From Dimorphilus gyrociliatus (Eukaryota; Animalia; Annelida), in contig CAJFCJ010000007.1 in assembly GCA_904063045.1 (NCBI GenBank), positions 1,332,510 to 1,396,509 on the forward strand: DNA of 64,000 nt, in the 5' to 3' direction. This document shows, one piece after another, positions 1-41,649 of this stretch (positions are counted from its first letter, which is position 1; the number at the start of each line of letters is the position of its first letter). Made by a program: the position numbers and the translations under genes. The notes under the pieces are model-generated. The model was not told the DNA's origin and ran no database searches. It saw only the letters and a program-made list of their open reading frames with translations.

Positions 1-2207
1 TTTTCCTTGGAGGAGGAAAGAAGAAATTAATTTTAAAAATATATTTTTAATATATGCATAATTACTAAGGGTTTTTAATTTTTGGCGGGGATATTTTGAT
101 TTTAAAAAATTTGTACTTACAATTGAATTCTTTGTTTATTAATAAGCTTTCTAATAATATAATATTCTATCGCCATTTTATTTCGTGGCTTAGAACCAAC
201 TAATAATCGCTTAACAGAGTACGTGTAACAACCAAATACGAAAGGATTAATACTAGTCACGTGATATCTTTTTTTTTTTAGTACATACATATTAATATAT
301 ATACCCATATATTATAAAAATCAAGCTACGAATGCATATAGTCAATGTCTGAGTGAGAGAAAAGTAACGGGTAAGAATATTTGCATGTTTCCAGTGTATG
401 GAATATTGAATGATTGACGAGAAAAGAGAGGAATATAAGATAAATATTAATATTATCACAATGGTTCTAATTGTACAATTAACAATAAATTTAAAAAAAA
501 AAAACGACATACAAATTAAAAAAGTTTATATTTTTGTTTACAAAAAACTAGGTCATTCAACTTACTGTAGATTAAAAAAAAATATATCTAAAAAACTTAT
601 TACATTCTTTCAAATATCTAATTAACTAACTGATTAATTAATTAGTCTATTAGTTAGTTGTGTGTGTGTGTTTTTTTTTCTTTTTAATTATTATCAACAG
701 TTCGTCTATTTTCTTTCTATTAGTTAAGAAAGTACTGTATATTATTTATTCACTTTGAAAAGAAAATGACTTGTTAAATATCATTAAATTTAATGATGAA
801 AAGAAATAAAAAGTAGTGAAAAATATTCATCGAAAGTTTACTTAAGTAAAAAACCTCTGTTACATGCGGTAGCATACATAGTATCAGTTTATTAATGTTA
901 ATTATTGACCTATATCTTGAATTAAATACATTAAATTTAATATTATTATCATAATTGATTTAATATGCATTGATAAAAAAATAATAAAGGAGGAAAGCAA
1001 ATATATACAGAATACAAATATGCTGTTTATACATTGTATACTATAGATAAATGGTAAATATATATATATATATAAATTTATACTGTACATATTATAGAAA
1101 ATAATTATTAATAATTAAGCCTATATTTCCAATAGGAAAGAAGAATTTTGTAAATATATTACAGTTATTTTTTTTATATACAAATATTATAATAAATTAA
1201 ATTTTTTCTTTTTTTTATAATAAGAAAAAAACAGTAAATAGAAATCAATTTGTAACAGCTGTTACTCTCCAAACTAGCTTCCTTGACTAATTATTAATAA
1301 CTTACTTTATCAATTTGTTTCATATGATTTGTTAAAGATACTAGAAATGATACAATTGGTATTTCAGGTTATTGTTTTATTTGTTTTACACTTTTTTTGT
1401 ATCAGAAAATCTTTCTTCTCACTTAAATTATCAAGTTTTAGAGACATTTTTTTATATATTTAAGAATTATTGATGTCATGTGTTATATTTTGTGTTTTCA
1501 TTAAAAATAATCTCTTCCTGTATTCTTAAAAAACATTTGTATTTAATTTTATATTTAGGTCAACAGAATGTTATATATTTTAGTACAGTTGGCCTTAGAA
1601 CAAAGATCGGTTTACTACATCAATTTTAGAGAGGAAAAAAATGGAAAGTTTAAAAAACTATTCCATTAGTTTCTAAACATGATAATAGTTTATTAAATAC
1701 TATTAATAAACATACTATATATCTATATACTGTATATAACAAAAAAGAAACAATCTCTATTCAGGTACGTATTAAAACTTATTGGAAAATATATTCAATT
1801 TTTTAGTTTTTAATTCTATAAATACAGAGAGTACTGCGTATTGTACAGTAGTATACTGTATAGAGTTTTTTATTGTATTGTTATTATATTTTTTATATCT
1901 AGTGTATTGTAAAAATTTATGTCATATCAGTATATACAATATATACAGTTTATAAATATAGTAAATATATATATATATAATATAGGCCGTATTTTGTTTA
2001 TGTACAGTAGGCTAATGTTTTTAAATAAACTGTTTTATTCATAATTATTATTATTATTATTATTATTGTTAAAGTTTAGAATTGAAAGAGGAATTTGAAT
2101 CTGGTAAAAATATATTTTATTCTCTCTTCTCCTTCTGTTCCTACTCTTCTCTCTCTCACTATTGCTTCGTCGTAAAGAAACGTAATGATGCGGTCAACGG
2201 TATAATT

Positions 2208-3470
2208 ATGGTTCGATATTCGGAAATCAATGACCTAAGGAGCAAGTTAAATCATTTTGTAATAAATACTTTATCTAATAGTAGTTTGACGGAGAGTGAA
2301 AAGAATAACAAATCCTGGGATCACCTTTTAAACTTTCTTAACGAATCTATTCAATTGGACTATTGGGAATATTTTGATATCCTTATTAATCATAATATGC
2401 TCTCTTATCTAAAGCAAATCTGTACTATGATACTCAAAAGTAAATTGCATAACAAGATGGATCTAATCAGAAAAATTTTATCAGTTCGAGGAAGATTAAC
2501 GAAGGGTAAAACCCTAATTCAACGGCTAATGAGGAGAATGTATCCAGGTTTAAATGATATTGAAAAGATAACCATACTAGTCGATATTGCGGAAGAATTG
2601 AAAAAAGATAAGAATTATTTAAATTTATCAACGGAAATATGGAATAATTTAAAAGAATGGTATAATTTTACTATTCATCACGCCTGGTATACGATATTAT
2701 TCAATTATCAATTTTTGGATATACTATTATATCATTTTACTGATATTTATGAAAATTTCTTTAAGAATATTTTAAACTACGCTGCATCAATACCATTCTT
2801 ACCTGAACCGCAAAGTTTACAAATCATATTTAATCATCCAACATTTAAGAATAATCAGAGTTGCCGCAATTTTATATTTGAATTCATATTTCATTTGAAT
2901 ATCTTTTATACGGCGGCAAATTTTACCTCTTGCCGTCAGGAAAAGCTAATTAACCTATTCAATATTGTACTTAATAACAGCGAAGAATTGAGTGGAATAT
3001 CTCAAAACCTTATTAATAATGCCTATCTATCGATGATTAGTCATTTAACAAGTATATCGAGTATTCTTTTGTATAGGAATTGCCATCAGTACAGTCGTTG
3101 TCATCCCGATAGTACAGACTTAAATCATGGTCAATTTATTGCGTCTCTTACTTATCATGGCTATACATTTGATTCTTTGAACATTCCAGATTCTTTTTAT
3201 AAACTTATCGATAAAAATGAATACTGTTATCGAATTTTTAATAGTCTATTAACTAATTCGGACGTCAGGCATTATCATCTTTTCACATTGAAAGCATTTG
3301 GCTATGGAACTATTGCATCTTTAAAATCTATAACTAGATATCAACTAAGAAAATCTTTAAAGCAACCATTTCAAGCTAATCTTGATAAATTTCTAAAAGA
3401 AAACAATTTACCCCATTCTATTCGAATTTTTTTAAAAATGGACGACGAAATTGACTTTAAAAGACTATAG
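2208..3470 (+). CDS. BC-box (SOCS/VHL-box-like) helical-repeat protein, paralogue 1 (420 aa, one large coding exon)
   Basis: First ATG of the 2082..3470 ORF is at 2208 (track start is TTG). C-terminus SLKSITRYQL...PFQANL...LPHSIRIFL fits a BC-box plus cullin-box layout. Shares ILKSKLHNK, IIFNHPTF and LTYHGYTF motifs with the neighbouring ORFs. Confidence 0.8.
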   Translation: MVRYSEINDLRSKLNHFVINTLSNSSLTESEKNNKSWDHLLNFLNESIQLDYWEYFDILINHNMLSYLKQICTMILKSKLHNKMDLIRKILSVRGRLTKGKTLIQRLMRRMYPGLNDIEKITILVDIAEELKKDKNYLNLSTEIWNNLKEWYNFTIHHAWYTILFNYQFLDILLYHFTDIYENFFKNILNYAASIPFLPEPQSLQIIFNHPTFKNNQSCRNFIFEFIFHLNIFYTAANFTSCRQEKLINLFNIVLNNSEELSGISQNLINNAYLSMISHLTSISSILLYRNCHQYSRCHPDSTDLNHGQFIASLTYHGYTFDSLNIPDSFYKLIDKNEYCYRIFNSLLTNSDVRHYHLFTLKAFGYGTIASLKSITRYQLRKSLKQPFQANLDKFLKENNLPHSIRIFLKMDDEIDFKRL

Positions 3471-3851
3471 GAAATATTTTTAAACATTTGTGCTAATTGT
3501 TTTTTTGGTTCTTATTTTTTTCTCTTCGTTTTTTTAATACAAAACCTCTTTAATTTATTATTATTATTATTATTTAATTTTTTTTTAAAAAAAAAAAATC
3601 GTTAATGTGTCTAAAAAAATTTGTGTTGGGTTTAAATAGTCCGTTAGTGAGTTGACACTACTCTCAATTGACTAACGATTGTTTTACATCTTTAGACACG
3701 TTGGCTCCTTCTTCAATGTTAACAATTTTGTATAAATATAGATTTGTTGATTAAAAGTTGTAAGTAACAATTAGTTATTAATTAATTAGAAAAAAGAATA
3801 AGGTGAAGAAGTGTGCAATATAACGTGTACTTTTTTTTTATAGATAGAATT

Positions 3852-5414
3852 ATGAACGAAATACTAGAATATATTAGATTGGAGGATATTGAATCACTTC
3901 GCAAGTGTTTAATTAGGGAAAAGGATAAAATACCTGATATAATTTTTATAAGATGCTTAAATACGGCGTTAAGTACTAAGAAATACGATACTTTTAAATC
4001 GTTATGCGTAGCCTACATCTGTAGGATTGTTGATATGGTACCGTATAATAACGAAGATGTATATACTGATGAAAGCTTTCCTCAAATTACCGGAGAAGAT
4101 ATTAAAAAACGTTTGAAATTATGGTTTAAACTCGTTAAAAGTAAAGTTAAGAAACAAATTGGATCAACCAATCAGGGAACGATTGAATCGAATATGATAA
4201 TATTTGATAATTTAAACGATACGATTGAATTATGTTTTGCTGATTTTTCGCCAATTAATATTTTACTATTAAAGAATGCAATTGAGGAAAATGATCGATT
4301 CAATTTCGATATTATAACAAATAGTAGAGACGTTTCAAAAACGATTTACTCGTTAAGCCTTGTGATTAAAAGTAATTTTGAAGATAGATATAAAATAGTT
4401 GTAAAAATGATAAGAAATGCTCCATTAACACTAAGTGTTGTTAGCGATATCTTAGCAATCGAGAAGCCATTTAGCGAATTATTCGATTTTCTAAAAGAAT
4501 ACGATCAGACAAAGAACTATTCGAATATCTTATGTAATAATTGTTTAAGAAATCCTCATAAAGAAATCTACGAAGCGGCAATTAAAAGTAAAATATTACC
4601 GTTTATAGAATATAACGCATGCTATTCGTTACTTGGAGATTGCGTATTCTTCGAGGATCTTTTAAAGGATTTCTCCGATATCTATGAATCATTATTCAAA
4701 AATATATATTGTTATAGAGAAGAGTTAATATTTTTACCAAGATCTCATACTTTAATTACAATTGCATGTCTTCGTAAAAGATTCAAGTATGAAAGAAATT
4801 TCTTCAAGTTAATATTCAATCTATTATTTGACGTTAATCAATTGAATCTCTCTGTAGACGTTCTTAGATTTGGTAAAAATTTTCAAGAGTTATTATATAT
4901 TATATTAGTTGTTAATGAATATTCATCGGTAATTAATCAAGATGATATTGATATTGCTTATAAATTTATATTTGGTAATGTTAAACGTTTAAGTAATTAT
5001 TGCTTTTATACAATTAACGAAATACTTGCAACGTTAATATGGTTTGGTCATAGAATTTATAAGATTGAATTGGATGATGAATCAATTGAATTAATGAAAA
5101 ATACTAAATATATGAATCATTTTTTAAATATTCTCCTTAAATTATCCAATCAGAAAGTGTATAATAAGTACTTTTTTAAAATTTATCGTAAATCTTATAT
5201 TCTATCCTTACAAGATTTAACAATGATTACAATTAAACATCAAATAAATAAGCCATTTAGATATAATCTACAACATCTTATTCAATCTTCCTATCTACCA
5301 CCATATTTCTATAATTTGTTAAGTCTTGAATGTCAATTTGAATGGATTCAATCAGTTAAGACAAAAATTTTCAAATTCTTTAAAAACTATCCCCACTTTA
5401 ATCTTCCATTCTGA
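3852..5414 (+). CDS. BC-box helical-repeat protein, paralogue 2
   Basis: ATG at 3852 follows a poly-T/AG acceptor ending at 3843. Ankyrin-like helix pairs (LNTALSTKKYDTFKSLC, LKNAIEENDRFNFDII), motif IKSNFEDR, C-terminal SLQDLTMITI...PFRYNL...LPPYFYNLL. Confidence 0.8.
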   Translation: MNEILEYIRLEDIESLRKCLIREKDKIPDIIFIRCLNTALSTKKYDTFKSLCVAYICRIVDMVPYNNEDVYTDESFPQITGEDIKKRLKLWFKLVKSKVKKQIGSTNQGTIESNMIIFDNLNDTIELCFADFSPINILLLKNAIEENDRFNFDIITNSRDVSKTIYSLSLVIKSNFEDRYKIVVKMIRNAPLTLSVVSDILAIEKPFSELFDFLKEYDQTKNYSNILCNNCLRNPHKEIYEAAIKSKILPFIEYNACYSLLGDCVFFEDLLKDFSDIYESLFKNIYCYREELIFLPRSHTLITIACLRKRFKYERNFFKLIFNLLFDVNQLNLSVDVLRFGKNFQELLYIILVVNEYSSVINQDDIDIAYKFIFGNVKRLSNYCFYTINEILATLIWFGHRIYKIELDDESIELMKNTKYMNHFLNILLKLSNQKVYNKYFFKIYRKSYILSLQDLTMITIKHQINKPFRYNLQHLIQSSYLPPYFYNLLSLECQFEWIQSVKTKIFKFFKNYPHFNLPF

Positions 5415-5939
5415 TTATTAAAAAGAAAAATCAATTAACAACAATAACAAACAAACAAACAAACAAATGAACACAAGTTGACAAACAAGAAAAGAAGATT
5501 TATTAATATTTTTTTGTTTATTCGTCTATTCCTTTTTTTAATTGATAATTAATAATAAATATTAATTAGATCATGAGTATCTTTATATGATACTGCATGT
5601 ATATTATATAATTAGCCTGAGTAGTAATAAACTAAAGAAATATGAGTGACTGTCAATAAAATTTGGTTTACTATTGTCAGCTTGAAACAATTTACCTTTT
5701 CTACAATTCGAAAAAGCAGGGAAGAGAGAGACATTTAATTTATTCTTCAAAAGGAATTATGCAACATCTACAACTAATCTATCGTAAAATAAAACTATTT
5801 TTCAATACTCCAATAGAGAAAATTGTTGCGGAGAAGGTACGAAAATAGTTCATTTACATTTCTTTTACCGTTTTATTATATATTATAATATATATTTATA
5901 TAAGTATAGGATGAATTCAAACCTGGTCCAATTGATGTT

Positions 5940-7487
5940 ATGAATGAAGATTATCCCTTAAATGACGCTCAGAAAGATGCTTTTAACAAGCTAAAGGCAA
6001 TTATCATGGAAGGAGATGATAACGCATTTAAACTAGCATTATTGAATAACGATCACGTTGATTATCATGTAATTGTAAAATGTATTCATACGTGTATTAG
6101 ATACGAAAAGGACGATACCCTTAAAAATTTGCTTACTAATTATATCCTTGATTTTTACGATATAACAAATCCTGAAGGGAAGAAACTATTGAATGCTCTA
6201 TATGATAAAACGGCAATATGTCTTATTGAAATGGATAAAGCATGCTTATTTAAATTTATACTTCAAAAACAAATTCATTATCTTCATTCAAATCGTGAAA
6301 TACCAATTTTCGATGACCTTTTATTTACAATACTTGAACTTGGAAGGGAAGAATGTCTAGAGATTCTTCTAGACAGTTCAGTTTTAAGAGATCACGAATC
6401 GGCTTTTGCTCAAGTTCTCAATAGTAAATTAAAGAATAAAAAGACAATATTTTTAAGGATGCTATCCCGAATTGTAAACGATGAATATTTAAATCTTGCA
6501 ATTATCAGAAATTGCCTCATACAAAAGGTTTATTTGGAAGATTTAAAAGAAGTTGTAACATTTATGGAACTATCGAATGAAGCTAGGAATATATTGTGTA
6601 GATATTCGTTAGTTAGTCATAATTTTTCATTCCTTAATTACGGATTGGAGAGTGGATTGTTCAAGCTGACAAAGGAGCACGTTCAATTTTCCATTGAATT
6701 TTCATTTTTGAAAGAAATATTAAATAGTCACGAAGAATTCTTTGAACGCCATATATGGCCATTTTTATTATGCCATTTAAAATCGGATCTATTGGATTGT
6801 CCATCTCAACTAATAGCAATTTTCAATCATAAAAAATTCAAAGATTGTCAATATTTTAGAAATACGACATTCCAATTGTTATTTCAAAATGGAAGACTTC
6901 CAGGATTTTATAGAAGGGAACGAAAACAATTTTGGAATTGGGTTTCATCATTTTGTGTACTAATCCATTATAGTGAAAATTACGGGGGATTATCTCAATA
7001 CGCTATAAATGATATGTTTGCATTTATATTTAATTATAAACCTGTAGGAAATTCTTTAGTAACCTTCTATGCAAGTTTAGTATCTTGTGTTTTGTGGTAC
7101 GGTTACTTGTTTACCGATATTAACGTATCGGTATTTTTCTATTGCCAGGTAAAATCGAATAATATCTATTCACGTTTAATATCCCTATTAATGGAAGCTA
7201 GTGGACAAAGGCACTTTAATCGTTTTACTAGAAAGAGAGATGGAGTAAATAGTATCATGCCATTAACTAATATGGCTAAATGGTCGATTAGACATAATCT
7301 TAAGAGACCGTTTCATTCGAATTTAAAGCAACTATTAAAGGGTCTACCACAAATTATGGAAAATATTATAAGTTTAAAAACGTCAATCGAAAATTTAGAT
7401 ATACCCTGGATGAGTTTTGCAATTGTTGATGATTGCGTAACAATTAATAAAGAAGGAATGAAATGTTCACAGATATTTTGTATTTAA
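5940..7487 (+). CDS. BC-box helical-repeat protein, paralogue 3 (possible in-frame upstream exon ending at 5836, acceptor 5909)
   Basis: 515-aa ORF with LNSKLKNK, WVSSFCVLIHYSENYGGLSQ, VLWYGYLF and C-terminal PLTNMAKWSI...PFHSNL...LPQIMENII. Confidence 0.82.
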   Translation: MNEDYPLNDAQKDAFNKLKAIIMEGDDNAFKLALLNNDHVDYHVIVKCIHTCIRYEKDDTLKNLLTNYILDFYDITNPEGKKLLNALYDKTAICLIEMDKACLFKFILQKQIHYLHSNREIPIFDDLLFTILELGREECLEILLDSSVLRDHESAFAQVLNSKLKNKKTIFLRMLSRIVNDEYLNLAIIRNCLIQKVYLEDLKEVVTFMELSNEARNILCRYSLVSHNFSFLNYGLESGLFKLTKEHVQFSIEFSFLKEILNSHEEFFERHIWPFLLCHLKSDLLDCPSQLIAIFNHKKFKDCQYFRNTTFQLLFQNGRLPGFYRRERKQFWNWVSSFCVLIHYSENYGGLSQYAINDMFAFIFNYKPVGNSLVTFYASLVSCVLWYGYLFTDINVSVFFYCQVKSNNIYSRLISLLMEASGQRHFNRFTRKRDGVNSIMPLTNMAKWSIRHNLKRPFHSNLKQLLKGLPQIMENIISLKTSIENLDIPWMSFAIVDDCVTINKEGMKCSQIFCI

Positions 7488-7783
7488 AACAAAAAGAAAG
7501 GAAGAAAAGAAAAGTTTTGGTTTTAAATATTTTTTTTTCAATAAATTAAGCATAGTTTCGGAATTTGGTAGTCAAATTTCATAGACTAACTTAGCAGCTG
7601 CGGGTAAAATAAGTCAGATGTCGCTACTAAACAATTTATATTTTCTGCGAAACTAACCTGCTTTTTTCCATATCCTTTTTTATTTACTTCTAAGTTTTAT
7701 CATATAAAATTTAACCAATTGCACAGTTTTCTATGTATAGTTAGGCTAGGAATAGGAAATAGTTACATATTGATTTATGATAT

Positions 7784-9370
7784 ATGACGGAGAAAGAGAA
7801 AATCGCTTTGGATTTGTTACAAGCAATTAGAGAAGAAGATATAAGATGTTTGCACGGAAGATTAGTTGCCTATTGTTCGGAGATCGACGGTGATCTACTA
7901 GAAAAATGTCTATATGAAGCATTGAGGCTTAATAAAGACGAATTTTTTATCTGTATAATAGTTCAATGGTTATGTAAATTGACTATTTATCAAGATTGGT
8001 TAATAGAGGAAAGTGTCTATGGCGAATACAGTCGTAAGGAACTAAGAGGATTTTACGATACTGTTGAGGGATGCTTACAAAATCACAATAACAAAGAACT
8101 TTTAGAATTTTGGAGAAAGTTAAAAACTATAAAAAAATGCGAAGATATATTTGGTTTGCTGTTTCAAAAAGTAATTCAGCAAGAGAATCGTGACTATTTC
8201 GACATATTTATGCGTTTAAAAATAATAAGAATGAACGAAGATACACCAGTTATGATATTAAAAAGTAAGTTTGATGATAAAATAAAAATCGCTAAATTAT
8301 TTTTTAAAAGTTACAATTGGAATGATGAAGATTCTTGGTTATATCTGATTTACGAAATAAATGATCCACCCAATTCTCAGAAACAACTTCGAATGCTAGC
8401 TAATTGTTTTGAAAAAAGGATAGATCTATACGATTTAAGAAAATTAATGGCTTGTCATAAAAAGACAACAAATCAATTTAGAAATTTTATCAAATTATTA
8501 TTGCCAAAACTAGATTTTGAATATTTTTTGGAGTTAATGAATCATAAAGTATTCGAATTTAACGAAACAGTTGCTTTGGCATCCCTCGAGTGTCAATGTA
8601 CATTTTTAAAGGAATTATTAAAACATTATGGTTCACTTTATCTTGAAGTAATAGAGAATATAAACCATGGATTATTCGGTACTAAACCAGAACCACTTTC
8701 ATACAATTTATATACAATATTTAAAGAAACTTTTAAAAGTCAGATGCATAAGAATATAGTTTTTGATTATTTCGTTACAAATATTATACCTTGTTATCAA
8801 AATGAACAAGAGCTTTCTTCAGGACCCGATTGCTGGTATTCTCTCTTCGTTCTTATTAGATTTAGTCAAGATGGTGCAATATTTTCCGAATTGATACGGA
8901 ATTACGTATATCTCTTTTTAAAGAAAAAGGCTGAAGATAGACTAAATTATCCAGTTTCCGAATCGAAAAGGATTACTACGTTTATTGCAACAATGATATG
9001 GCACGCTTTCTCAACTGATTATTTCCTATTTTTACACGATGAGACTAACGAATGCTTTGATTTTTTGAAAGAGCAAAATTTTCCATTCGAAATATTAATG
9101 TTAGCCAGTGATCAATCCTACTTTAATAAATTAGTTAAAATTCGTAAAGAAGCACGTCTAATGTCATTAAAAGAGATGGCAAGATGGACTTTAAGAAGAA
9201 ATATAAGAAAACCATTTCATGATAATCTAATGAAAATGATAAATGACTTGAAATTACCATTTTTAGTTGAAAAAATGCTTAACTTGCGAGAAATTATGCA
9301 AATTCATGGACTTTGTTGGAAACAATTCCAAGTTTCAAATGGTGAATTTGTTGTCTATGTTAAAATATAA
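7784..9370 (+). CDS. BC-box helical-repeat protein, paralogue 4
   Basis: 528-aa ORF with LYEALRLNKDEFFICII, ILKSKFDDKI and C-terminal SLKEMARWTL...PFHDNL...LPFLVEKML. Confidence 0.82.
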   Translation: MTEKEKIALDLLQAIREEDIRCLHGRLVAYCSEIDGDLLEKCLYEALRLNKDEFFICIIVQWLCKLTIYQDWLIEESVYGEYSRKELRGFYDTVEGCLQNHNNKELLEFWRKLKTIKKCEDIFGLLFQKVIQQENRDYFDIFMRLKIIRMNEDTPVMILKSKFDDKIKIAKLFFKSYNWNDEDSWLYLIYEINDPPNSQKQLRMLANCFEKRIDLYDLRKLMACHKKTTNQFRNFIKLLLPKLDFEYFLELMNHKVFEFNETVALASLECQCTFLKELLKHYGSLYLEVIENINHGLFGTKPEPLSYNLYTIFKETFKSQMHKNIVFDYFVTNIIPCYQNEQELSSGPDCWYSLFVLIRFSQDGAIFSELIRNYVYLFLKKKAEDRLNYPVSESKRITTFIATMIWHAFSTDYFLFLHDETNECFDFLKEQNFPFEILMLASDQSYFNKLVKIRKEARLMSLKEMARWTLRRNIRKPFHDNLMKMINDLKLPFLVEKMLNLREIMQIHGLCWKQFQVSNGEFVVYVKI

Positions 9371-10389
9371 TGTACTTTTACATTATCTATACTTTCTATT
9401 TTTAGTTGGCGATTTCTCTTTTACCTTCTTCGTGACTATTTACATAGACGTTTCTCTCTCTCTCTCTTCAAATCTTTTATCTTTCGCCTCTACTCTCTGT
9501 TTTGATGGAAGAATAAATAAATTATTTGAACGACACCATATATACTTTTACCTATTCGTGACGAGAATAACAAGGTTTTTCATCTAGATAAAAGAAACAT
9601 TAGAGATCTCATAAATTCTATGATTATGTCGTGGAAGAAGAAGGTCAAAGTTAATTTTATTTTGTACAATGAAGCGCTATCGTTAACCTTTCTGGTAACA
9701 AATCTCATTAAATAAAGATTTACCGTTTTCAATTAGGTGAGCTGTGTCCAACATAAGATATACAAGTATCTTCTTTAAAGGTTAACTTTGATAGTATTAT
9801 AGGAATTAGCGCCGACTGTGCAAAGAGAAATATAATATAAATCTACTGCAATATAGTATGAATAATTGCAGTATTGATAAAAAAAACAACTCGAATAAGT
9901 CTTTTTCAGCTAGGTTATTATAAAACAGCATAACAAATTAGTTTTAATTATATATCTTGTTAAAGACAATTAGTGATTGTTAACGCCATTTATAAGAAGA
10001 TATTTTTAGTGATTTTAGCATCTATTAGAAAAGTAGAGATGGTTTTGCCAGTAATCTAAACAGTGATGCGTCTACAATTATTATACTTGTCACGATAGTA
10101 TCTCCTGCAGTTGCACCACTGGATAACTCCCTTTGCTTATCAAAAAATCTAAATGGATAAGAAAGGCATAAGGAGGAAGAGAGAGAGCGCGCGAGGAAGA
10201 GAAGTAGATTGATTGTGTAGATACGAAAAAAAAAATGGGTCAAAAAAATAAAATACTTCATTAACTATTTTTATTTTTAATTTAAAGTTTTATACAGACA
10301 AGAATAAACGTTAAACTAAAAAGAAAACAAGAAATAAAAAGGTTTTACTTAACATTTTGACATTATTTGATATATTAATAAACAATAAT

Positions 10390-12216
10390 TCAAATATAGG
10401 ATAATCCAATAAATTCAGGAGATTTAGCAAATATATCGGAATCATTTTCAATACATAATTTATTGTTAATAATTTCAAAGTCAATTTTAGGGATATCAAC
10501 TCTTTCTACCTGTTTTGCCGGATTAATAAGATTTTCAACTGAGAAGGGAATATTACAAATTTTAACAAGGTTTTTCAAATTTTTTTGAAATGGCCTTTTT
10601 ATCTTCTCTCGGATTGTTCTTATAGCCATTGCTCGAAGGGTCATTAGACGGCATCTTCCGGTTGATTCTTTTAAAAGATAGTTGAAATTAAATTGTCCTG
10701 AAGTTTCAATTAGTAATTCCAACGTCTTCCCGTATATTTCATCCTCTTTTATTAAATCAAAGAAACGTCTTGGAAGCTCGAGAAACGTAAAAGTATAACC
10801 GTAATAGACCAATGTTGAGATTAACCTTGAGAAATACAACCTAAAACGTTCGTGTAAACATAGAGACGCCATCATTAGAGAGTTAAACGCGAAATCAATA
10901 ATTCGACGGGGAAATCCACCGAATTCTTCGGATTTATCCAACAACACGCAAAAGGAGTGGAGCCATTTTGGACTGTTTAACCTCTCATTTGGACGTAATA
11001 GAGATATAGATGCATGACGAAATAATAGTTCAAAAAATAGATTTCTATGAAATTGATTGCCACTAAATTGGGGATGTTGAGAGATAGCTAGCAGACTTGA
11101 CGATTCGGGAAGAATATTCTTCATCACGTGGCAAGATAAAATCGTAGTAAAGTACGACTTGTAAATGTCGGGGAAACGGCTTAACAGATAATCAAGAAAT
11201 TTACAAGGAAAACATATTGACTGCCTTGCATCTTCCTCAGAGAAATCTATTAAGCCGATGTCCAAGACATGCTGGAGTAAATCGTGTCGATCGCATCGCA
11301 TAACATAGTAACTAAGGTATTTTTTGTCCAATTTTTCCATTCTTAGTAGTTGTAGAGCTTGTTTGATGTCATTAATGCTAGCCTCGGTATTAAGACAAGC
11401 CATAACTATATGCTGGTTAAGTTGATCCTCATCTTCGAATCTTGATAACAATTCATCCATAAATTGAATTTTTCCTTCAAACTTACTATTCATAATGAGA
11501 GAGAATACCATATAATTTCTCTCCAGTCCAGTAAAATTTACCAAAATCTCAAAGCATTCCCTTCTATTCAACTGAGCAGCAATTCTTAAAAGCTTTTCGA
11601 CAAGGAATCTCTCTTTAAATAGTAAATTTTGCGTTCTTTCTTCCCAAATCTCTAGCATTTTTGGTCTATCAAATTCAATTATATCATGTCCTATATTTAT
11701 GTAAAATAATTTCAAGGACGATCGCAAAAAGTTAATCCCAGTTTTATGTAGATGAAATAAACATTCAATTACCAAAAATTCAAATACTTTAGGACGATTA
11801 TCTCTAATAGCCTCTTTTAAATATCTCTCAAAAATCAATTCGTCAACTAATCCTCCCTCAAAGACATTATCAAGCTGTACGAGAAAATAATCAATATTAT
11901 ATCTTAACTACACTAATCTCTCTCTCTCTCTCTCTCTATCTCTCTTCCTGTCATTCTCTTTTTCTCAACAAAAAAAAAAATAACTCAAGCACTCACATTG
12001 TTCCTTAATGACGGAAAGAGCATATCATCAGTTGGCACACTATCACGATTTCTCTGTTGTTTGTAATATTTTTACAAGTCATATCATTTAATGTATAATA
12101 ACAGTATCAAAGTTTATCTTATTGCAAAGTTCTACTTGATTTTAGAACATAAACAAACTTAATATAAGAAAAAAAAATCTTACAGTTGATCTTACGATGC
12201 TTGAAATTCCTCCCAT
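10390..12216 (-). CDS. BC-box helical-repeat protein, paralogue 5 (main exon 11874-10390; putative start microexon 12216-12196 or 12216-12184)
   Basis: The frame stays open upstream of the TTG track start with no ATG, and there is an acceptor ttattttctcgtacAG at 11875. Motifs IMNSKFEGKI, WLHSFCVLLDKSEEFGG, LVYYGYTF and TLRAMAIRTI...PFQKNL...IPFSVENLI. The microexon is inferred. Confidence 0.78.
11917..11937. repeat. (TC)n microsatellite
   Basis: Perfect dinucleotide run inside the predicted first intron of paralogue 5. Confidence 0.9.
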
Positions 12217-12250
12217 AATTATTACTCCTTAACAATATTATTAAAACCAA

Positions 12251-35591: not shown

Positions 35592-37254
35592 TCAAAAATA
35601 AGCTGCATTTCTGTATGAAGACAGAATAGCTAATGATTCGTAATATGGGGATTCGGTATTTAACTCCGACTCGTATACAACTTGATTATCAGTGATAAAA
35701 AAATTCACAGGTTGCAATTTAACAACTTCCATCTCTGTTTGTAGATTGATAATCTTTTCGAAATTGAGTGGGAGGTTGTACTTTTTTATCAACAACTTTA
35801 AATTATCTTGGAATGGTCTCTTAAGGGAAGTTCTGACAGCCCATCTGGCCATTCCTTTCAGAGACATAACGGTCGGTTGGCAATTAACATGTTTGAATAG
35901 TATATTATGATGAATTTGATTACAATTTTCCATAATTAAAGTATAAACTCTCTTTTGAATGCTATCCTCTACCATAACATTGAAAAATAAATCGGAAATG
36001 TCCAATTCGGTAAATGTGTATCCATACGAAATGAGAGTAACTATTAAAGTACCATAGAAAAATGCTAAAGAATGGGTAACGCCAGCGGTATTGTTTATCA
36101 AATATGAAAATAATACATTTACAACGTGCTGCGATAAACCAAACTTATTTTCACTACAATGTAACAAAACGCAGAATGACGATAACCACATTTGTCTTAT
36201 ATTCTTTGAAGGAAGACTACCTAAAAAGTCGTTTGTTTTTAAAATGAACGACTCAAATAGAATATTAATATAATCTTGACTTATTCCAATTTTAGGATGT
36301 TTAAATATAATAAGCATTTTCTCCCAACGATACATAATCCACGATGTATTTCTTTCATCAATTATTAATCTATTCAGATGAAGTTTGAACAGTTCACCAT
36401 ACCAGTCTAATAACTCTTGTAGGAAAGTACAATCGTAGAAGACTGTACCGTAGACATGCTCGCCGAGAAATTCAAAAAATTTACTCTCCATAGCGTATCT
36501 AAAGAATTCCATATGATCATTCATTAAAGTCGTATGACATAATTGACTTTTTGCTTTATCTCCCAGATTAATAAATGGTATAATAGATTTTAAGTCGTCC
36601 TTTTTAACTTTATGCATAATACAAGTTTTCAAAATGGGTAGTATGAGACATTCCTTATTTAGCAAATGAGAAATAGATTTTAGAAATAAATCAACCTTAT
36701 CTTCAAAATTACTAAGCAAAATAAGAGCGGCTGCTTCTCGATTCTTTGAAAATCTAATAAATTTTAATATAATAACAAAGCATTGTCTGTTATTTAAATT
36801 AATTGCCATTCTTAAATATCTATTAACATTTTCCAATTCTCTTCTATCCTTAGGAATTTTAATTGATATACGTAAAGTAACATCTAACCAATCAGGTTTA
36901 TCGTATTGAATTAAATAAGTAATAACATTATTCAATATATATTTAATTGATTTTAATTCTTCTTTCTCGTCTCTCGGATAAGGCCGACCAGCTAGTACTT
37001 TAAATCTAATGAGAAGCTCAAAAATTTCTTTCCTATCCTCTTTAACAGTTTGTAAAAGACCTTGAAGAAATTTTGAATCATTCAATTTCTTCAATTTCTT
37101 TAATAATAGCTTTTTAACTTGACAAATATCTCCTTCTTCAATAAATCGAAATAATTTTCTAGTAATATTAACAGACTCGCTACATTTATCCTTTAAATAT
37201 TTATAAAGTTTTTATTAAATTGGTACTTTATTTATTAAATTCATTTATTACCAT
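35592..37254 (-). CDS. BC-box helical-repeat protein, paralogue 6 (dispersed copy)
   Basis: The 500-aa ORF extends upstream in frame without an ATG. Likely start is ATG at 37254, then a 61-nt intron (37251-37191), then DKCSES. Motifs LLSNFEDKV, WLSSFCVLLHCSEN, LISYGYTF and SLKGMARWAV...PFQDNL...LPLNFEKII. Confidence 0.8.
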
Positions 37255-38000: not shown

Positions 38001-40007
38001 ATGTCCGACGTATCAAGTATGTGGGAAAAACTACAGAGACATGGCTCAAAGAAATATATTAGTGATTGTGAAGCGGAAATTCGTGAATTAATAAGGCAAG
38101 TTGACATAATGGTTGAGCACGAACGTCAAAAGTGGAATGCTGAGAAAACCAAATTAACCGCTAAGTGTTCCCAACTACAAAACGAATTAGAGCGTTCACT
38201 AAAGGAACTAACAGAATTTAAAAGATCATCTGCTGAAGTTGAAAGATCGAAACGGCAATTATCATACAGTTGCGAAAGGCAATTAGGATCGTTAAGAGCG
38301 GAAGTAGATACTATGAAAAAAGAGTACGATAAATTACATAGAAAGCACGAAAAGCATACAAAAGAAATGAAAAGAGAGGTAACCCGGCTTAAAACCGAAC
38401 TAGAAAGCAGTAAGAATGAAGTTAGTCGTCTCACAAATAAAACCTCAGATATGCGAACTCGTAATAAATCAATTGAAGAGGAAAAACAGAAGATGGAAAA
38501 CGAATTCCAAACTTTACTATCTGATAATAAAACTCTAAGAGACACGAGTGAGTTACTTCAAGGACAGATCGCAAACTATCAAAATGAATTGGAAAAGCGG
38601 AGGGAAATTATTGAAAAATCAGAATCAAACTTTAAGAATCAATTATGCCAGTTGGAAATTCAACTAGATGGAGCAAGGGACACAATCAATTGCCAAGAAG
38701 TTGAAATATCTAAACTAAGAACAATATTGGAAGATGCAAATGGACGTCAAAAGTCCACTAGCGATAATCAGGATAAAATTCTTATGGATCTGTACGAAAC
38801 CCAACAATCAAAACAGAAACTGCAGATAATAAAATTAGAATTGGAATCTGTACTTAAACTGAAAGATGAGCAACTTGTTAAGAACGATTATCATATTAAA
38901 CAGCTGGAGGAGAATATTCAAGAGCTTAGCTCAGCCGTAGAAGAGAAAGATAATTTGTTGCATAGCTTAAGGGAAAGTAACGAATCAGACGTATCATCTC
39001 AGATACATAGCTTACAAAATAAATTGAAAGCTTTGAAATCCGAAACCAAACAGAATAAGCTAAGAGAAAAAGAAGCGCAAGAAGAGCTATCTGCCGCTAA
39101 AAAACTAATTAATGATAAAAGTTTAGAATGCGATCAAATGAGAAGCAATATTAGAAAGCAATATGAACAAAGCCTTTATCTGACAAGAGAGAAATACGAG
39201 AATGAAATAAAGATTCTAGAAGATAAGATAACCTTGTTAACGGCAGATTTCGAAAGGGTTGAAAAGACAAATACATATTTATCTACTCAAGTTCAATTTT
39301 TCCAAGCGAGAAAGGAAGAAAGTGAAAGTGAACTGGAAAAGAGAACAAGAGAATTACAGAGTTTAGAAGAGGAGAAAATAATACCGTCCATAAAAGATGA
39401 AACTCAGGATAAACTTAAAGAGTTAAAGATTACCTACGAATCCAGCGTAACGTCCTTAGAGGAGCAGAATAGGACTCTGAGAACCAAAATAAGAGATTTA
39501 GAATCACAAATAAACGATTTACAAAATAGAGAAAATGAGGCAGAGCAAATTCTTGTTGCTAAAGAAGAAATGAATAAAAAGTTAGAATTGGTTAAGTTAC
39601 AAGATACGAAACATTTAGCAACAGTCGAAAAGTTAGCGGATGAACGAGTTGAACATTACAAACAACGTTATTTATCAAATTCTAAAGCTTACGAGGCAAC
39701 TATCGACTCCCTAAAAATGGAAGTAGCTTTGTACAAACACAAATTAGAACAACAAGAAACCGAAGCTAAGCGATTACACGAAGAAAATAGTGCCATGTCT
39801 TCGTTTCTAAACAAATATGAGGATCATATGCAATACGAGGCAACAAACAAATCTTGGTTCATGCCTGACGATGACGACGTATCTCTCTTGGAGGAGCAGG
39901 CCGTAGAATCCTTTATAGAAGATCACCGAAATCGTACTAAACAATTAGAGAACAAGTTGGATACTCATATACACGAATTAAAACAATCGCTAGATTACGA
40001 GTTATAA
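38001..40007 (+). CDS. CEP63: Centrosomal coiled-coil protein CEP63/DEUP1 family
   Basis: N-terminus SDCEAEIRELIRQVDIMVEHERQKW resembles the CEP63 segment [25 protein letters not shown], and C-terminal LENKLDTHIHELK resembles LERLDAHIEELK (recalled sequences). Long heptad coiled coil; intronless CDS. Confidence 0.8.
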   Translation: MSDVSSMWEKLQRHGSKKYISDCEAEIRELIRQVDIMVEHERQKWNAEKTKLTAKCSQLQNELERSLKELTEFKRSSAEVERSKRQLSYSCERQLGSLRAEVDTMKKEYDKLHRKHEKHTKEMKREVTRLKTELESSKNEVSRLTNKTSDMRTRNKSIEEEKQKMENEFQTLLSDNKTLRDTSELLQGQIANYQNELEKRREIIEKSESNFKNQLCQLEIQLDGARDTINCQEVEISKLRTILEDANGRQKSTSDNQDKILMDLYETQQSKQKLQIIKLELESVLKLKDEQLVKNDYHIKQLEENIQELSSAVEEKDNLLHSLRESNESDVSSQIHSLQNKLKALKSETKQNKLREKEAQEELSAAKKLINDKSLECDQMRSNIRKQYEQSLYLTREKYENEIKILEDKITLLTADFERVEKTNTYLSTQVQFFQARKEESESELEKRTRELQSLEEEKIIPSIKDETQDKLKELKITYESSVTSLEEQNRTLRTKIRDLESQINDLQNRENEAEQILVAKEEMNKKLELVKLQDTKHLATVEKLADERVEHYKQRYLSNSKAYEATIDSLKMEVALYKHKLEQQETEAKRLHEENSAMSSFLNKYEDHMQYEATNKSWFMPDDDDVSLLEEQAVESFIEDHRNRTKQLENKLDTHIHELKQSLDYEL

Positions 40008-40764: not shown

Positions 40765-41649
40765 TTAGGAGACAGTTGACACTACAGTGGGGGAAACGCT
40801 ATTTTTTCTTATACCCAACGCCTTTTTAAAGGCGATATTAAATTTAGTATTTATAAGTGCATAAACAAAAGGATTCATACAGCTGTTTGCGTGAGATAAC
40901 AGAATGGAGATTATTAATAGCTGAATGTAAACCTTACCAGTGAATAGTGTAACAGAGTTTAGTATATTAATTGGTAACCAACAAGATGCGAAAAGTAACA
41001 AGACAATAAAGATACGTTTTGCCGCTCTTGACTCTTTTTTCAGTGTAATAACAGACTTCTTATCACCCTTTGAACATTTTAATCTAACAACGTGAAACAT
41101 ATACCCATACACAATGAAGAGGAAAACTAGAGGAATTAAATAAAAACCAAAAAAGTTAAAGTAAACCATATAGTTCATATCAATAAGTAGAACGAATGCA
41201 CACGTTCCAGACCATCCAAGATTCCAACCGAAAAGTGGTACAAATCCAACAATAGCTCCAAATATCCATGAGCAAGCTATCAACAAACCAGCCGCCTTCG
41301 TTCCTATTTTTTGACGGTGAATAACGGGAAACTTTATAGCCAAGAATCTTTCTATTGCTATCGCTACTAGGCTAAAGATAGATATTTGAGTACATACAAC
41401 GATAGTTGAGTTCATTAGTAAGCAAGCATAATAATGTCTTGGTAAGCCATAATTATTAACAATAACACAAGGAATACCAATCATCCCAACGGCAAAATCG
41501 GCAGCTGCCAAAGATGCTATAAGGTAATTTGTTACCGTCTGAAGGGTTCTTTCTCTGTAGATGGCTAATACGACTAATCCATTACCAAAAATGGCTAAAA
41601 CCGCTATAAGGACCTCGGCCGCGATCTGTACCTTTCCCCAATCATCCAT
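40765..41649 (-). CDS. Adenosine receptor-like class A GPCR (294 aa, intronless CDS)
   Basis: Seven TMs with adenosine-receptor signatures: TM1 EVLIAVLAIFGN, TM3 TQISIFSLVAIAIERF, TM5 MNYMVYFNFF, TM6 CWLP, TM7 LSHANSCMNPFVY. Confidence 0.88.
   Translation of the reverse strand: MDDWGKVQIAAEVLIAVLAIFGNGLVVLAIYRERTLQTVTNYLIASLAAADFAVGMIGIPCVIVNNYGLPRHYYACLLMNSTIVVCTQISIFSLVAIAIERFLAIKFPVIHRQKIGTKAAGLLIACSWIFGAIVGFVPLFGWNLGWSGTCAFVLLIDMNYMVYFNFFGFYLIPLVFLFIVYGYMFHVVRLKCSKGDKKSVITLKKESRAAKRIFIVLLLFASCWLPINILNSVTLFTGKVYIQLLIISILLSHANSCMNPFVYALINTKFNIAFKKALGIRKNSVSPTVVSTVS

Follow-up and report, generated by a model that had tools for sequence, protein, structure and literature searches.

In a 64,000-nucleotide stretch of the genome of the annelid Dimorphilus gyrociliatus (C7:1332510-1396509, hereafter the window; C7 is contig CAJFCJ010000007.1), five neighbouring genes, which we call g1 to g5, encode large and mutually divergent proteins that end in a shared box. 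After comparing these proteins with one another, with the 78-Mb assembly and with public sequence and structure collections, we consider it likely that g1 to g5, a sixth copy in the window (g6) and at least 16 more genes encode ASB-like substrate receptors for the Elongin B/C-cullin-RING ubiquitin ligase, in a family restricted to Dimorphilus or the dinophilids. A role as Elongin B/C-cullin substrate receptors had been put forward for the five genes from their letters alone (the sequence-only reading), and profile, fold and docking computations now support it in silico.

A tandem array of divergent genes

Five intact open reading frames (ORFs) of 420-530 codons lie where the sequence-only reading had placed them. 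GC content is 21-39% across the window and 26-32% locally at the five genes, and at this local composition we estimate that stops make up roughly one in 12 random codons, so that frames this long are not a product of chance. Pseudogenes and chance ORFs alike were ruled out by the long open frames in AT-rich DNA, by RNA from g3-g5 and by conserved orthologues. The five proteins align end to end (alignment A1) with 21-28% identity, and identity between paralogues is 15-32% in an alignment of 20 family members (A2). The shortest of the five, g1, starts about 100 residues into the family alignment, and g2, the most divergent, sits on the longest terminal branch of the tree (1.68). Every one of the six ordered motifs that had been read from the five proteins turned out to be a block of conserved columns: LLxxAIxxxxRxCFxIL, ILKSKFxxK, IFxHxxF, WxGY and the terminal box SLxxMARxxIRxxIKxPFxxNLxxL...LP, together with SFCVLxxxSExxGG, which is clear in g3 and g5 and weaker in the other three.

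When the assembly was searched with a profile of the five genes, 21 places matched, 17 of them contiguous (C7:1302538-1344359) and arranged head to tail or tail to tail. The five genes are the last of this 17-gene tandem array, which reaches about 30 kb upstream of the window. The profile also matched g6 (C7:1368185-1369669, E 1.9e-85) and dispersed copies at C7:3.93 Mb and C6:4.27 Mb. L048, which is more distantly related, lies at C3:2.77 Mb (G000:C3:2772398-2775496), where a minus-strand open frame (1309-3087) encodes 590 amino acids; hhalign relates it to the family with P 1.3e-7 over 339 columns. Genome-wide, the family has at least 22 members. The picture of an isolated five-gene expansion within a single-copy neighbourhood was therefore mistaken, because the array continues upstream, and the window itself holds a sixth copy.

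The C-terminal box is related to SOCS boxes

The sequence-only reading had taken the shared C-terminal box for a BC/SOCS box, and profile comparison agrees. We aligned the C-termini of the family (A3) and, separately, 30 SOCS boxes of the same genome that score above the Pfam cut-off (A4). In hhalign the two alignments matched with 96.7% probability (P 3.9e-10) and with 38 of 39 columns in register, such that BC box fell on BC box and LP on LPLP. A profile of the full-length family, compared with the genuine SOCS boxes, picked the same segment (columns 458-499, 94.1%), and a control comparison with an ankyrin alignment was negative (0.07%). SOCS_box was also the sole Pfam family to recur among the 20 members (3 of 20, best E 0.0011). 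The gathering cut-off of Pfam SOCS_box (PF07525) is 23.5 bits; L048, which carries LPIP, passes it at 24.7 bits, and L009 is borderline, with 24.1 bits in a genome scan and 19.5 bits in hmmscan. Judged by its sequence, L048 appears to bridge the family and the canonical SOCS boxes. It also carries a PFxxN motif (PPFKKNV).

BC boxes have the consensus (S/T/P)LxxxCxxx(V/L/I), in which A or S can stand for the Cys. The family conforms to it: all 20 members share the Leu, with A/T/S/C/V at position +4 and I/L/V/T at position +8. Further on, at least 90% of members retain the Pro of LP. In an AlphaFold2 (AF2) model of g3 the box folds into three helices (residues 442-453, 458-465 and 471-477), which reappear when the C-terminal half is modelled alone; three helices in this arrangement are the known topology of SOCS boxes. 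Relative to the canonical SOCS profile there is a four-residue insertion, which yields a PFxxNL helix between BC box and cullin box that is nearly invariant across members. The box is followed in the g3 model by a beta-hairpin tail (residues 493-502), and many members have a tail at this place. Profile and model together point to a divergent SOCS box.

PDB sequences searched with profiles of A1 and A3 yielded no SOCS-box protein, the sole match being one at chance level to the N-terminus of STAT2. Other Pfam matches (TetR_C_5-like, DUSP, AAA_22 and others) occurred once each, below cut-off, and were set aside as noise. Two proteins from Logan contigs, P0025 (198 amino acids) and P0023 (447 amino acids), are shorter or divergent and carry a family-type box, P(F/Y)xxN(I/L)...LP; in the tree the partner of P0023 is L020.

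The predicted shape of the body is ASB-like

The g3 model is all-helical (predicted local distance difference test score, pLDDT, 86.3; predicted template-modelling score, pTM, 0.75); between residues 124 and 263 its helix pairs follow one another at a spacing of ~30 residues. Its best shape match in the ESM Atlas is the ASB3 cluster, with a template-modelling (TM) score of 0.56 both ways over 436 residues and at near-equal length; the next match scores 0.33. We also compared the fold with 48,161 PDB chains. The N-terminal half matched the ankyrin domain of TRPV3 (Z 10.3), ankyrin-1 (Z 9.7) and Fem1B (Z 8.3), and many other ankyrin proteins gave Z 8-10. Folded alone, the C-terminal half reached a pLDDT of 90.5 and had ASB8 as its best PDB match (VIA Z 7.2, root-mean-square deviation 3.4, 144 amino acids) and likewise as its top Foldseek match. 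ASB7 (Z 6.3) and ASB9 (Z 6.1) also matched this half, so that three ASB structures stand within the top seven of all chains compared, each of them matching through its own C-terminus. A Foldseek search of PDB with the whole model gave nothing at E<=1e-3 and only generic alpha-solenoids at TM 0.1-0.24.

The nearest clusters in ESM feature space were SOCS_box, ASB17, Ank and ASB1, with low recognition; ASFV MGF360 and OspC, which also appeared there, scored below 0.9 and were taken as noise of composition or of ankyrin-like character. At the sequence level, the family profile matches P0024, a bona fide Ank_2 protein (50 bits), with E 3.4e-4 in a search of 1.84 billion proteins and an hhalign probability of 89.5%. 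This indirect connection is the only sequence link to ankyrin; the rest is likeness of shape. The family probably works like the ASB proteins and descends from them, and we do not file it among ankyrin proteins as defined by sequence.

Predicted docking on Elongin C

The genome holds about five to six cullin genes and two Elongin C genes, L054 (C7:4250133) and L055 (C9:2345401). The latter share the same two-exon structure, and their products differ at few residues. We predicted the complex of the 59-residue g3 box with the worm's own Elongin C, which was entered as two separate exon chains. The predicted complex scored 0.66, against 0.03 for the best of three controls, on a scale whose calibration mark is reached by 51 of 78 solved complexes and by 2 of 108 mismatched pairs. 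Three runs shared at least 70% of their contacts, with a partner pLDDT of at least 51. In the predicted interface, residues 7-9, 11-13 and 15-16 of the box face the last helix of Elongin C and the loop preceding it, and the confident contacts, P7, L8, A12 and I16, are exactly the BC-box positions. As complexes of SOCS boxes with Elongin C have already been solved, this docking shows likeness and is not proof of binding.

Distribution, orthologues and selection

We searched 1.84 billion representative proteins (clustered at 50%) exhaustively with a HMMER profile of the 20 members. There were 21 matches at E<=1e-30, then a cliff, and four weak matches besides; of the 21 strong matches, some are identical to D. 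gyrociliatus genes and the others share 39-86% identity with them. At E<=0.001 the search turned up no ASB of another animal among these representatives, in keeping with the sequence-only reading, which recognised no named ASB orthologue in the genes. A word-indexed protein search with A2, which is uninformative on distant kin, returned only g3 itself. The non-identical matches come from genomic contigs of runs SRR23372216, SRR23372228 and SRR23372229, which represent one close relative. From these searches the family appears to be restricted to D. gyrociliatus and this relative, as expected of the lineage-specific family that had been suggested.

A contig of the relative (L086) carries orthologues of g5, g4 (3314-4921), g3 (5342-6823) and g1 (P0016, 8177-9457), as well as of the gene just upstream of the window, all in the same order; g1 and its orthologue share the same Met start. 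An orthologue of g2 was not found on this syntenic contig; either the relative has lost the gene, or D. gyrociliatus has recently gained it or has retained it. The orthologue of g6 (P0010) is flanked by the same CEP63, G-protein-coupled receptor (GPCR) and UHRF1-like neighbours. Amino acid identity between orthologues is 77% for g5, 74-75% for g4, 76% for g3, 55-56% for g1 and 64% for g6. In a maximum-likelihood tree, 15 of the 20 worm genes pair 1:1 with a gene of the relative at 100/100 support, and the 50% clustering of the library may conceal partners of the remaining members. Because stems in this tree are long (0.7-3.0) and tips short, the duplications are old.

The proportion of nonsynonymous differences (pN) between orthologues is 0.125-0.26 and lies far below the synonymous proportion (pS), which is saturated at 0.58-0.77, in every pair; owing to this saturation we dropped the dN/dS ratio and give pN and pS instead. 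Neighbouring genes have a pN of 0.10 (CEP63) and 0.07 (GPCR), so that the family evolves 1.3-3 times faster. These comparisons clearly indicate purifying selection along the whole length of the proteins, at a somewhat faster rate of change than in their neighbours. The sequence-only reading had expected a conserved ligase-binding end and a fast-diverging, variable substrate end, as in nematode and plant F-box expansions. This part of it, in effect an arms-race analogy, is not supported: most members are 1:1 orthologues, pN is much smaller than pS, and, taken by domain, the solenoid diverges no faster than the box.

Transcripts and gene structure

Public RNA data for the locus consist of contigs of one run, which give no expression levels; that these contigs derive from RNA follows from the GT-AG joints present in them. 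They cover g3-g5. For g3, a 1788-nt contig spans 6300-7485 without a splice; the gene is 100% identical to the public gene DgyrCDS5896 (551 amino acids), whose model has an additional short 5' exon within 5663-5848. For g4, which is identical to the public protein P0006, an unspliced contig spans 7765-9341. An intron at 9342-9405 is optional, with the unspliced form at depth 68.8 and the spliced form at depth 43.9, both in RNA contigs, and splicing would trade the last nine residues of g4 for a hydrophobic tail of ~60 amino acids. Plus-strand GT-AG introns at 9342-9405 and 10239-10297 indicate that the transcript continues ~1 kb beyond g4, where it overlaps the 3' end of the convergent g5.

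Spliced contigs divide g5 into three coding exons (12214-12184, 12053-11997 and 11874-10390), that is, two mini-exons of 33 and 57 bases followed by an exon of 1485 bases. The joints, 11874/11997 and 12053/12184, have CT..AC ends, which are GT-AG on the minus strand, and the end that had been marked for the cluster (12216) agrees with the g5 ATG at 12214. The earlier statement that each protein is encoded almost entirely by one large exon therefore stands for g5 and accords with the g3 and g4 contigs, which are unspliced over the coding sequence that they cover; RNA proof of the exon layout is confined to g5. N-myristoylation signals have the consensus MGxxxS/T. The first exon of g5, MGGISSIVRST, has the form of such a signal (Gly2, Ser6), and this mini-exon recurs upstream of the relative's g5 orthologue, where MGGIQSIFKSN precedes GTAAG (L086:456-490). 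By this motif, g5 may be membrane-anchored through N-myristoylation.

A public protein search with g2 gave zero matches, not even g2 itself, in a word-indexed search that is uninformative on distant kin; g2 is therefore apparently unannotated and missing from the published gene set. In an exact-sequence look-up, from which records of the same genome were possibly excluded, g1 and g2 were not on record.

The features of the window are collected in Table 1. Around g6, between 30500 and 47400, the neighbouring genes keep their order in the relative, with amino acid identities of 54-94%.

Table 1. Family genes, C-terminal boxes and neighbours of g6 in the window (positions count from its first letter)
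Feature	Position	Strand	Description
g1	2208-3470	+	420-aa family member, single coding exon; from ORF and alignments
g2	3852-5414	+	520-aa family member; frame open from 3813
g3 main exon	5940-7487	+	515 aa counted from internal Met
g4	7784-9370	+	528-aa family member
g5 main (third) coding exon	10390-11874	-	494 codons
g5 second coding exon	11997-12053	-	19 codons; RNA contig joints
g5 first exon	12184-12241	-	ATG at 12214; encodes MGGISSIVRST
g6	~35595-37211	-	Sixth family copy in the window, 539-codon open frame; L007
g1 SOCS-like box	3300-3467	+	SLKSITRYQL, PFQANL, LPHS; row of A3
g2 SOCS-like box	5187-5372	+	SLQDLTMITI, PFRYNL, LPPY; row of A3
g3 SOCS-like box and start of beta-hairpin tail	7242-7418	+	PLTNMAKWSI, PFHSNL, LPQI; first row of A3
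g4 SOCS-like box	9146-9328	+	SLKEMARWTL, PFHDNL, LPFL; row of A3
g5 SOCS-like box	10477-10659	-	TLRAMAIRTI, PFQKNL, IPFS; row of A3
UHRF1-like gene, PHD and SRA domains	~32.1-34.9 kb	-	
CEP63-like gene	38001-40001	+	
Rhodopsin-type GPCR gene	40768-41649	-	
Transferrin-like exons	45.9-47.4 kb	-	

Discussion

We propose that residues 1 to ~435 of these proteins form a solenoid with two helices per repeat and a period of ~30 residues, probably derived from ankyrin repeats. This solenoid, which differs strongly between paralogues, would be the part that binds targets. The last ~45 residues ahead of the short tail would form a three-helix SOCS box, whose first helix is the putative BC box, (S/P/T)-L-x-x-M-(A/T/S/C)-R-x-x-(I/L/V), with its invariant Leu predicted to insert into the pocket at the C-terminal helix of Elongin C. 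The third helix would carry the conserved LP at the position of the cullin box in canonical SOCS boxes. Such receptors would bind Elongin B/C, recruit a cullin, either Cul5 or Cul2, and promote ubiquitylation of whichever targets the solenoids hold. The family is, on this account, an unusual branch of the known ASB-type adaptors and no new kind of system.

ASB proteins (vertebrate ASB1-18, with the Elongin B/C complexes of ASB9, ASB7 and ASB8 solved) share with the family its size and its predicted plan, an N-terminal solenoid of two-helix repeats and a C-terminal three-helix SOCS box; they supply the best structural matches to the family (the ASB3 cluster and ASB8, ASB7 and ASB9), and the BC box is likewise predicted to lie on Elongin C. 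The family differs from them in repeats that Pfam Ank models do not see, in having no orthology to any named ASB, in replacing the Cys of the BC box by Ala, Thr or Ser and LPxP by LP, and in its PFxxNL insert and, in many members, its beta-hairpin tail. The same genome has ordinary ASB genes as well, with Ank and SOCS domains of canonical type. With the Pfam SOCS_box, the module by which SOCS, ASB, SPSB and WSB proteins bind Elongin B/C and Cul5, the family shares profile homology over the whole module and keeps the BC-box consensus and the position of LP; it departs from that module in scores of 10-13 bits or none for the window genes against the cut-off of 23.5, in the four-residue insertion, in the loss of the second Pro and in a box that is not terminal. 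Receptors of the Cul2 type (FEM1, ZYG11/ZER1 and VHL-box proteins) also combine a BC box with a repeat domain, and Fem1B is among the structural matches. The Cul2-box pattern is PhiPxxPhixxxPhi, which the LPxxPhixxxPhi of the family fits; however, no sequence homology to these receptors was detected, and the C-terminal module of the family aligns to SOCS boxes and not to the VHL box. The F-box and BTB-MATH arrays of nematodes and plants are similarly tandem, with many divergent receptors that share one ligase-docking module. In contrast to those arrays, the copies described here are old and retain 1:1 orthologues, purifying selection acts over their full length, and they are not diversifying recently or rapidly.

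Several results weigh against reading the family as ASB-like ligase receptors. None of the five window genes reaches the Pfam SOCS_box cut-off, the best being g4 (12.6 bits, E 0.17, residues 461-494) and g1 (10.6 bits, E 0.69, residues 412-452 of a 462-amino acid ORF from the TTG at 2082), with no match for the other three. The Cul5 box carries LPxP, a motif that nearly all canonical SOCS boxes of the same genome have in the consensus form LPLP; it is absent from all five genes (LPHS, LPPY, LPQI, LPFL and IPFS), and L048 alone in the family has LPIP. Canonical SOCS boxes end the protein, whereas these proteins run on for another 20-60 residues in a conserved tail, and between orthologues the box is no better conserved than the body. 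As to the body, Pfam Ank models match none of the 20 members at E<=1, and A2 compared by hhalign with 23 canonical Ank_2 segments from the same genome gave a negative result (0.35% probability). The ankyrin-like body of the sequence-only reading amounts to a likeness of shape and the indirect link to P0024, and is not supported by these direct sequence comparisons. The PDB fold matches, at Z 6-11, are modest: helical repeats often reach this range simply by their arrangement, and PPR and TOG proteins match the N-terminal half as well as ankyrin proteins do. The docking may reflect memory of solved SOCS-box/Elongin C structures, and the split Elongin C differs from the calibration set. Binding to Elongin B/C stands as a prediction.

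A SOCS-derived cap might still bind Elongin B/C after cullin recruitment had been lost, which would make the proteins non-degradative scaffolds, or decoys that sequester Elongin B/C or targets. Most family members, the five genes included, have lost LPxP, which nearly all canonical boxes of the genome keep as LPLP; the invariant PFxxNL insert and the beta-hairpin tail change the cullin-facing region, and the box is not especially conserved between orthologues. We nevertheless hold this loss to be unlikely: the Pro of LP persists in nearly all members, LPxxPhixxxPhi also fits the Cul2-box pattern, the three-helix topology is kept in the model, and L048 retains LPIP. The same loss of LPxP, the PFxxNL helix and the hairpin after the box could instead mark re-wired docking, to Cul2 in place of Cul5 or to a new partner through the hairpin, perhaps with g5 anchored in the membrane; we regard this as something of a long shot. 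That the likeness to SOCS boxes is convergent, and that these are helical-repeat proteins unrelated to cullin ligases, seems very improbable. The sub-threshold Pfam scores of the five single sequences, the empty whole-model Foldseek search and the readiness of helical repeats to yield middling structural matches all speak for convergence; it is opposed by a profile-profile match in register over almost every column with a negative control, by a family member above Pfam's own cut-off, by three ASB structures so near the top of the PDB comparison and by a predicted Elongin C interface that falls exactly on the BC-box positions.

A different question is what ASB-like receptors would be kept for. 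The genes could be a fast-evolving repertoire for surveillance of pathogens or selfish elements, which is compatible with a role as ligase receptors and which we think rather doubtful. They lie in a tandem array and diverge extremely between paralogues; there is some turnover, with g2 lacking a counterpart on the syntenic contig of the relative; and their pN exceeds that of their neighbours (0.07-0.10). The few expanded families of this worm are, moreover, mostly local duplicates with immune roles, among which the present family is not named (PMC7854359). Against this stand the 15 of 20 members that are 1:1 with the relative, old duplications whose copies have been stably kept, pN far below pS in every pair and a putative substrate-binding solenoid as conserved as the box. 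The data thus do not fit a rapidly diversifying surveillance repertoire, though individual sites could.

The D. gyrociliatus genome paper reports only nine expanded families and, besides, 45 species-specific orthogroups with 270 genes; neither SOCS nor ankyrin is mentioned in its text (PMC7854359). A full-text literature search found no description of such a family. A genome that ranks among the most streamlined of free-living animals, with very few expanded families (PMC7854359), still keeps more than 20 old, divergent genes for ASB-like receptors. Their retention, mostly in one array and with conservation in the relative, suggests that even a minimal worm needs a sizeable set of lineage-private ligase specificities. 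The family shows ankyrin-SOCS proteins drifting beyond the reach of Pfam, and surveys of gene families that rely on Pfam would miss such genes. Its members are natural variants of the cullin-box region, on which the choice of cullins can be studied, and if their docking were in truth re-wired, they would make up a dinophilid-specific ligase-receptor system with docking rules of its own.

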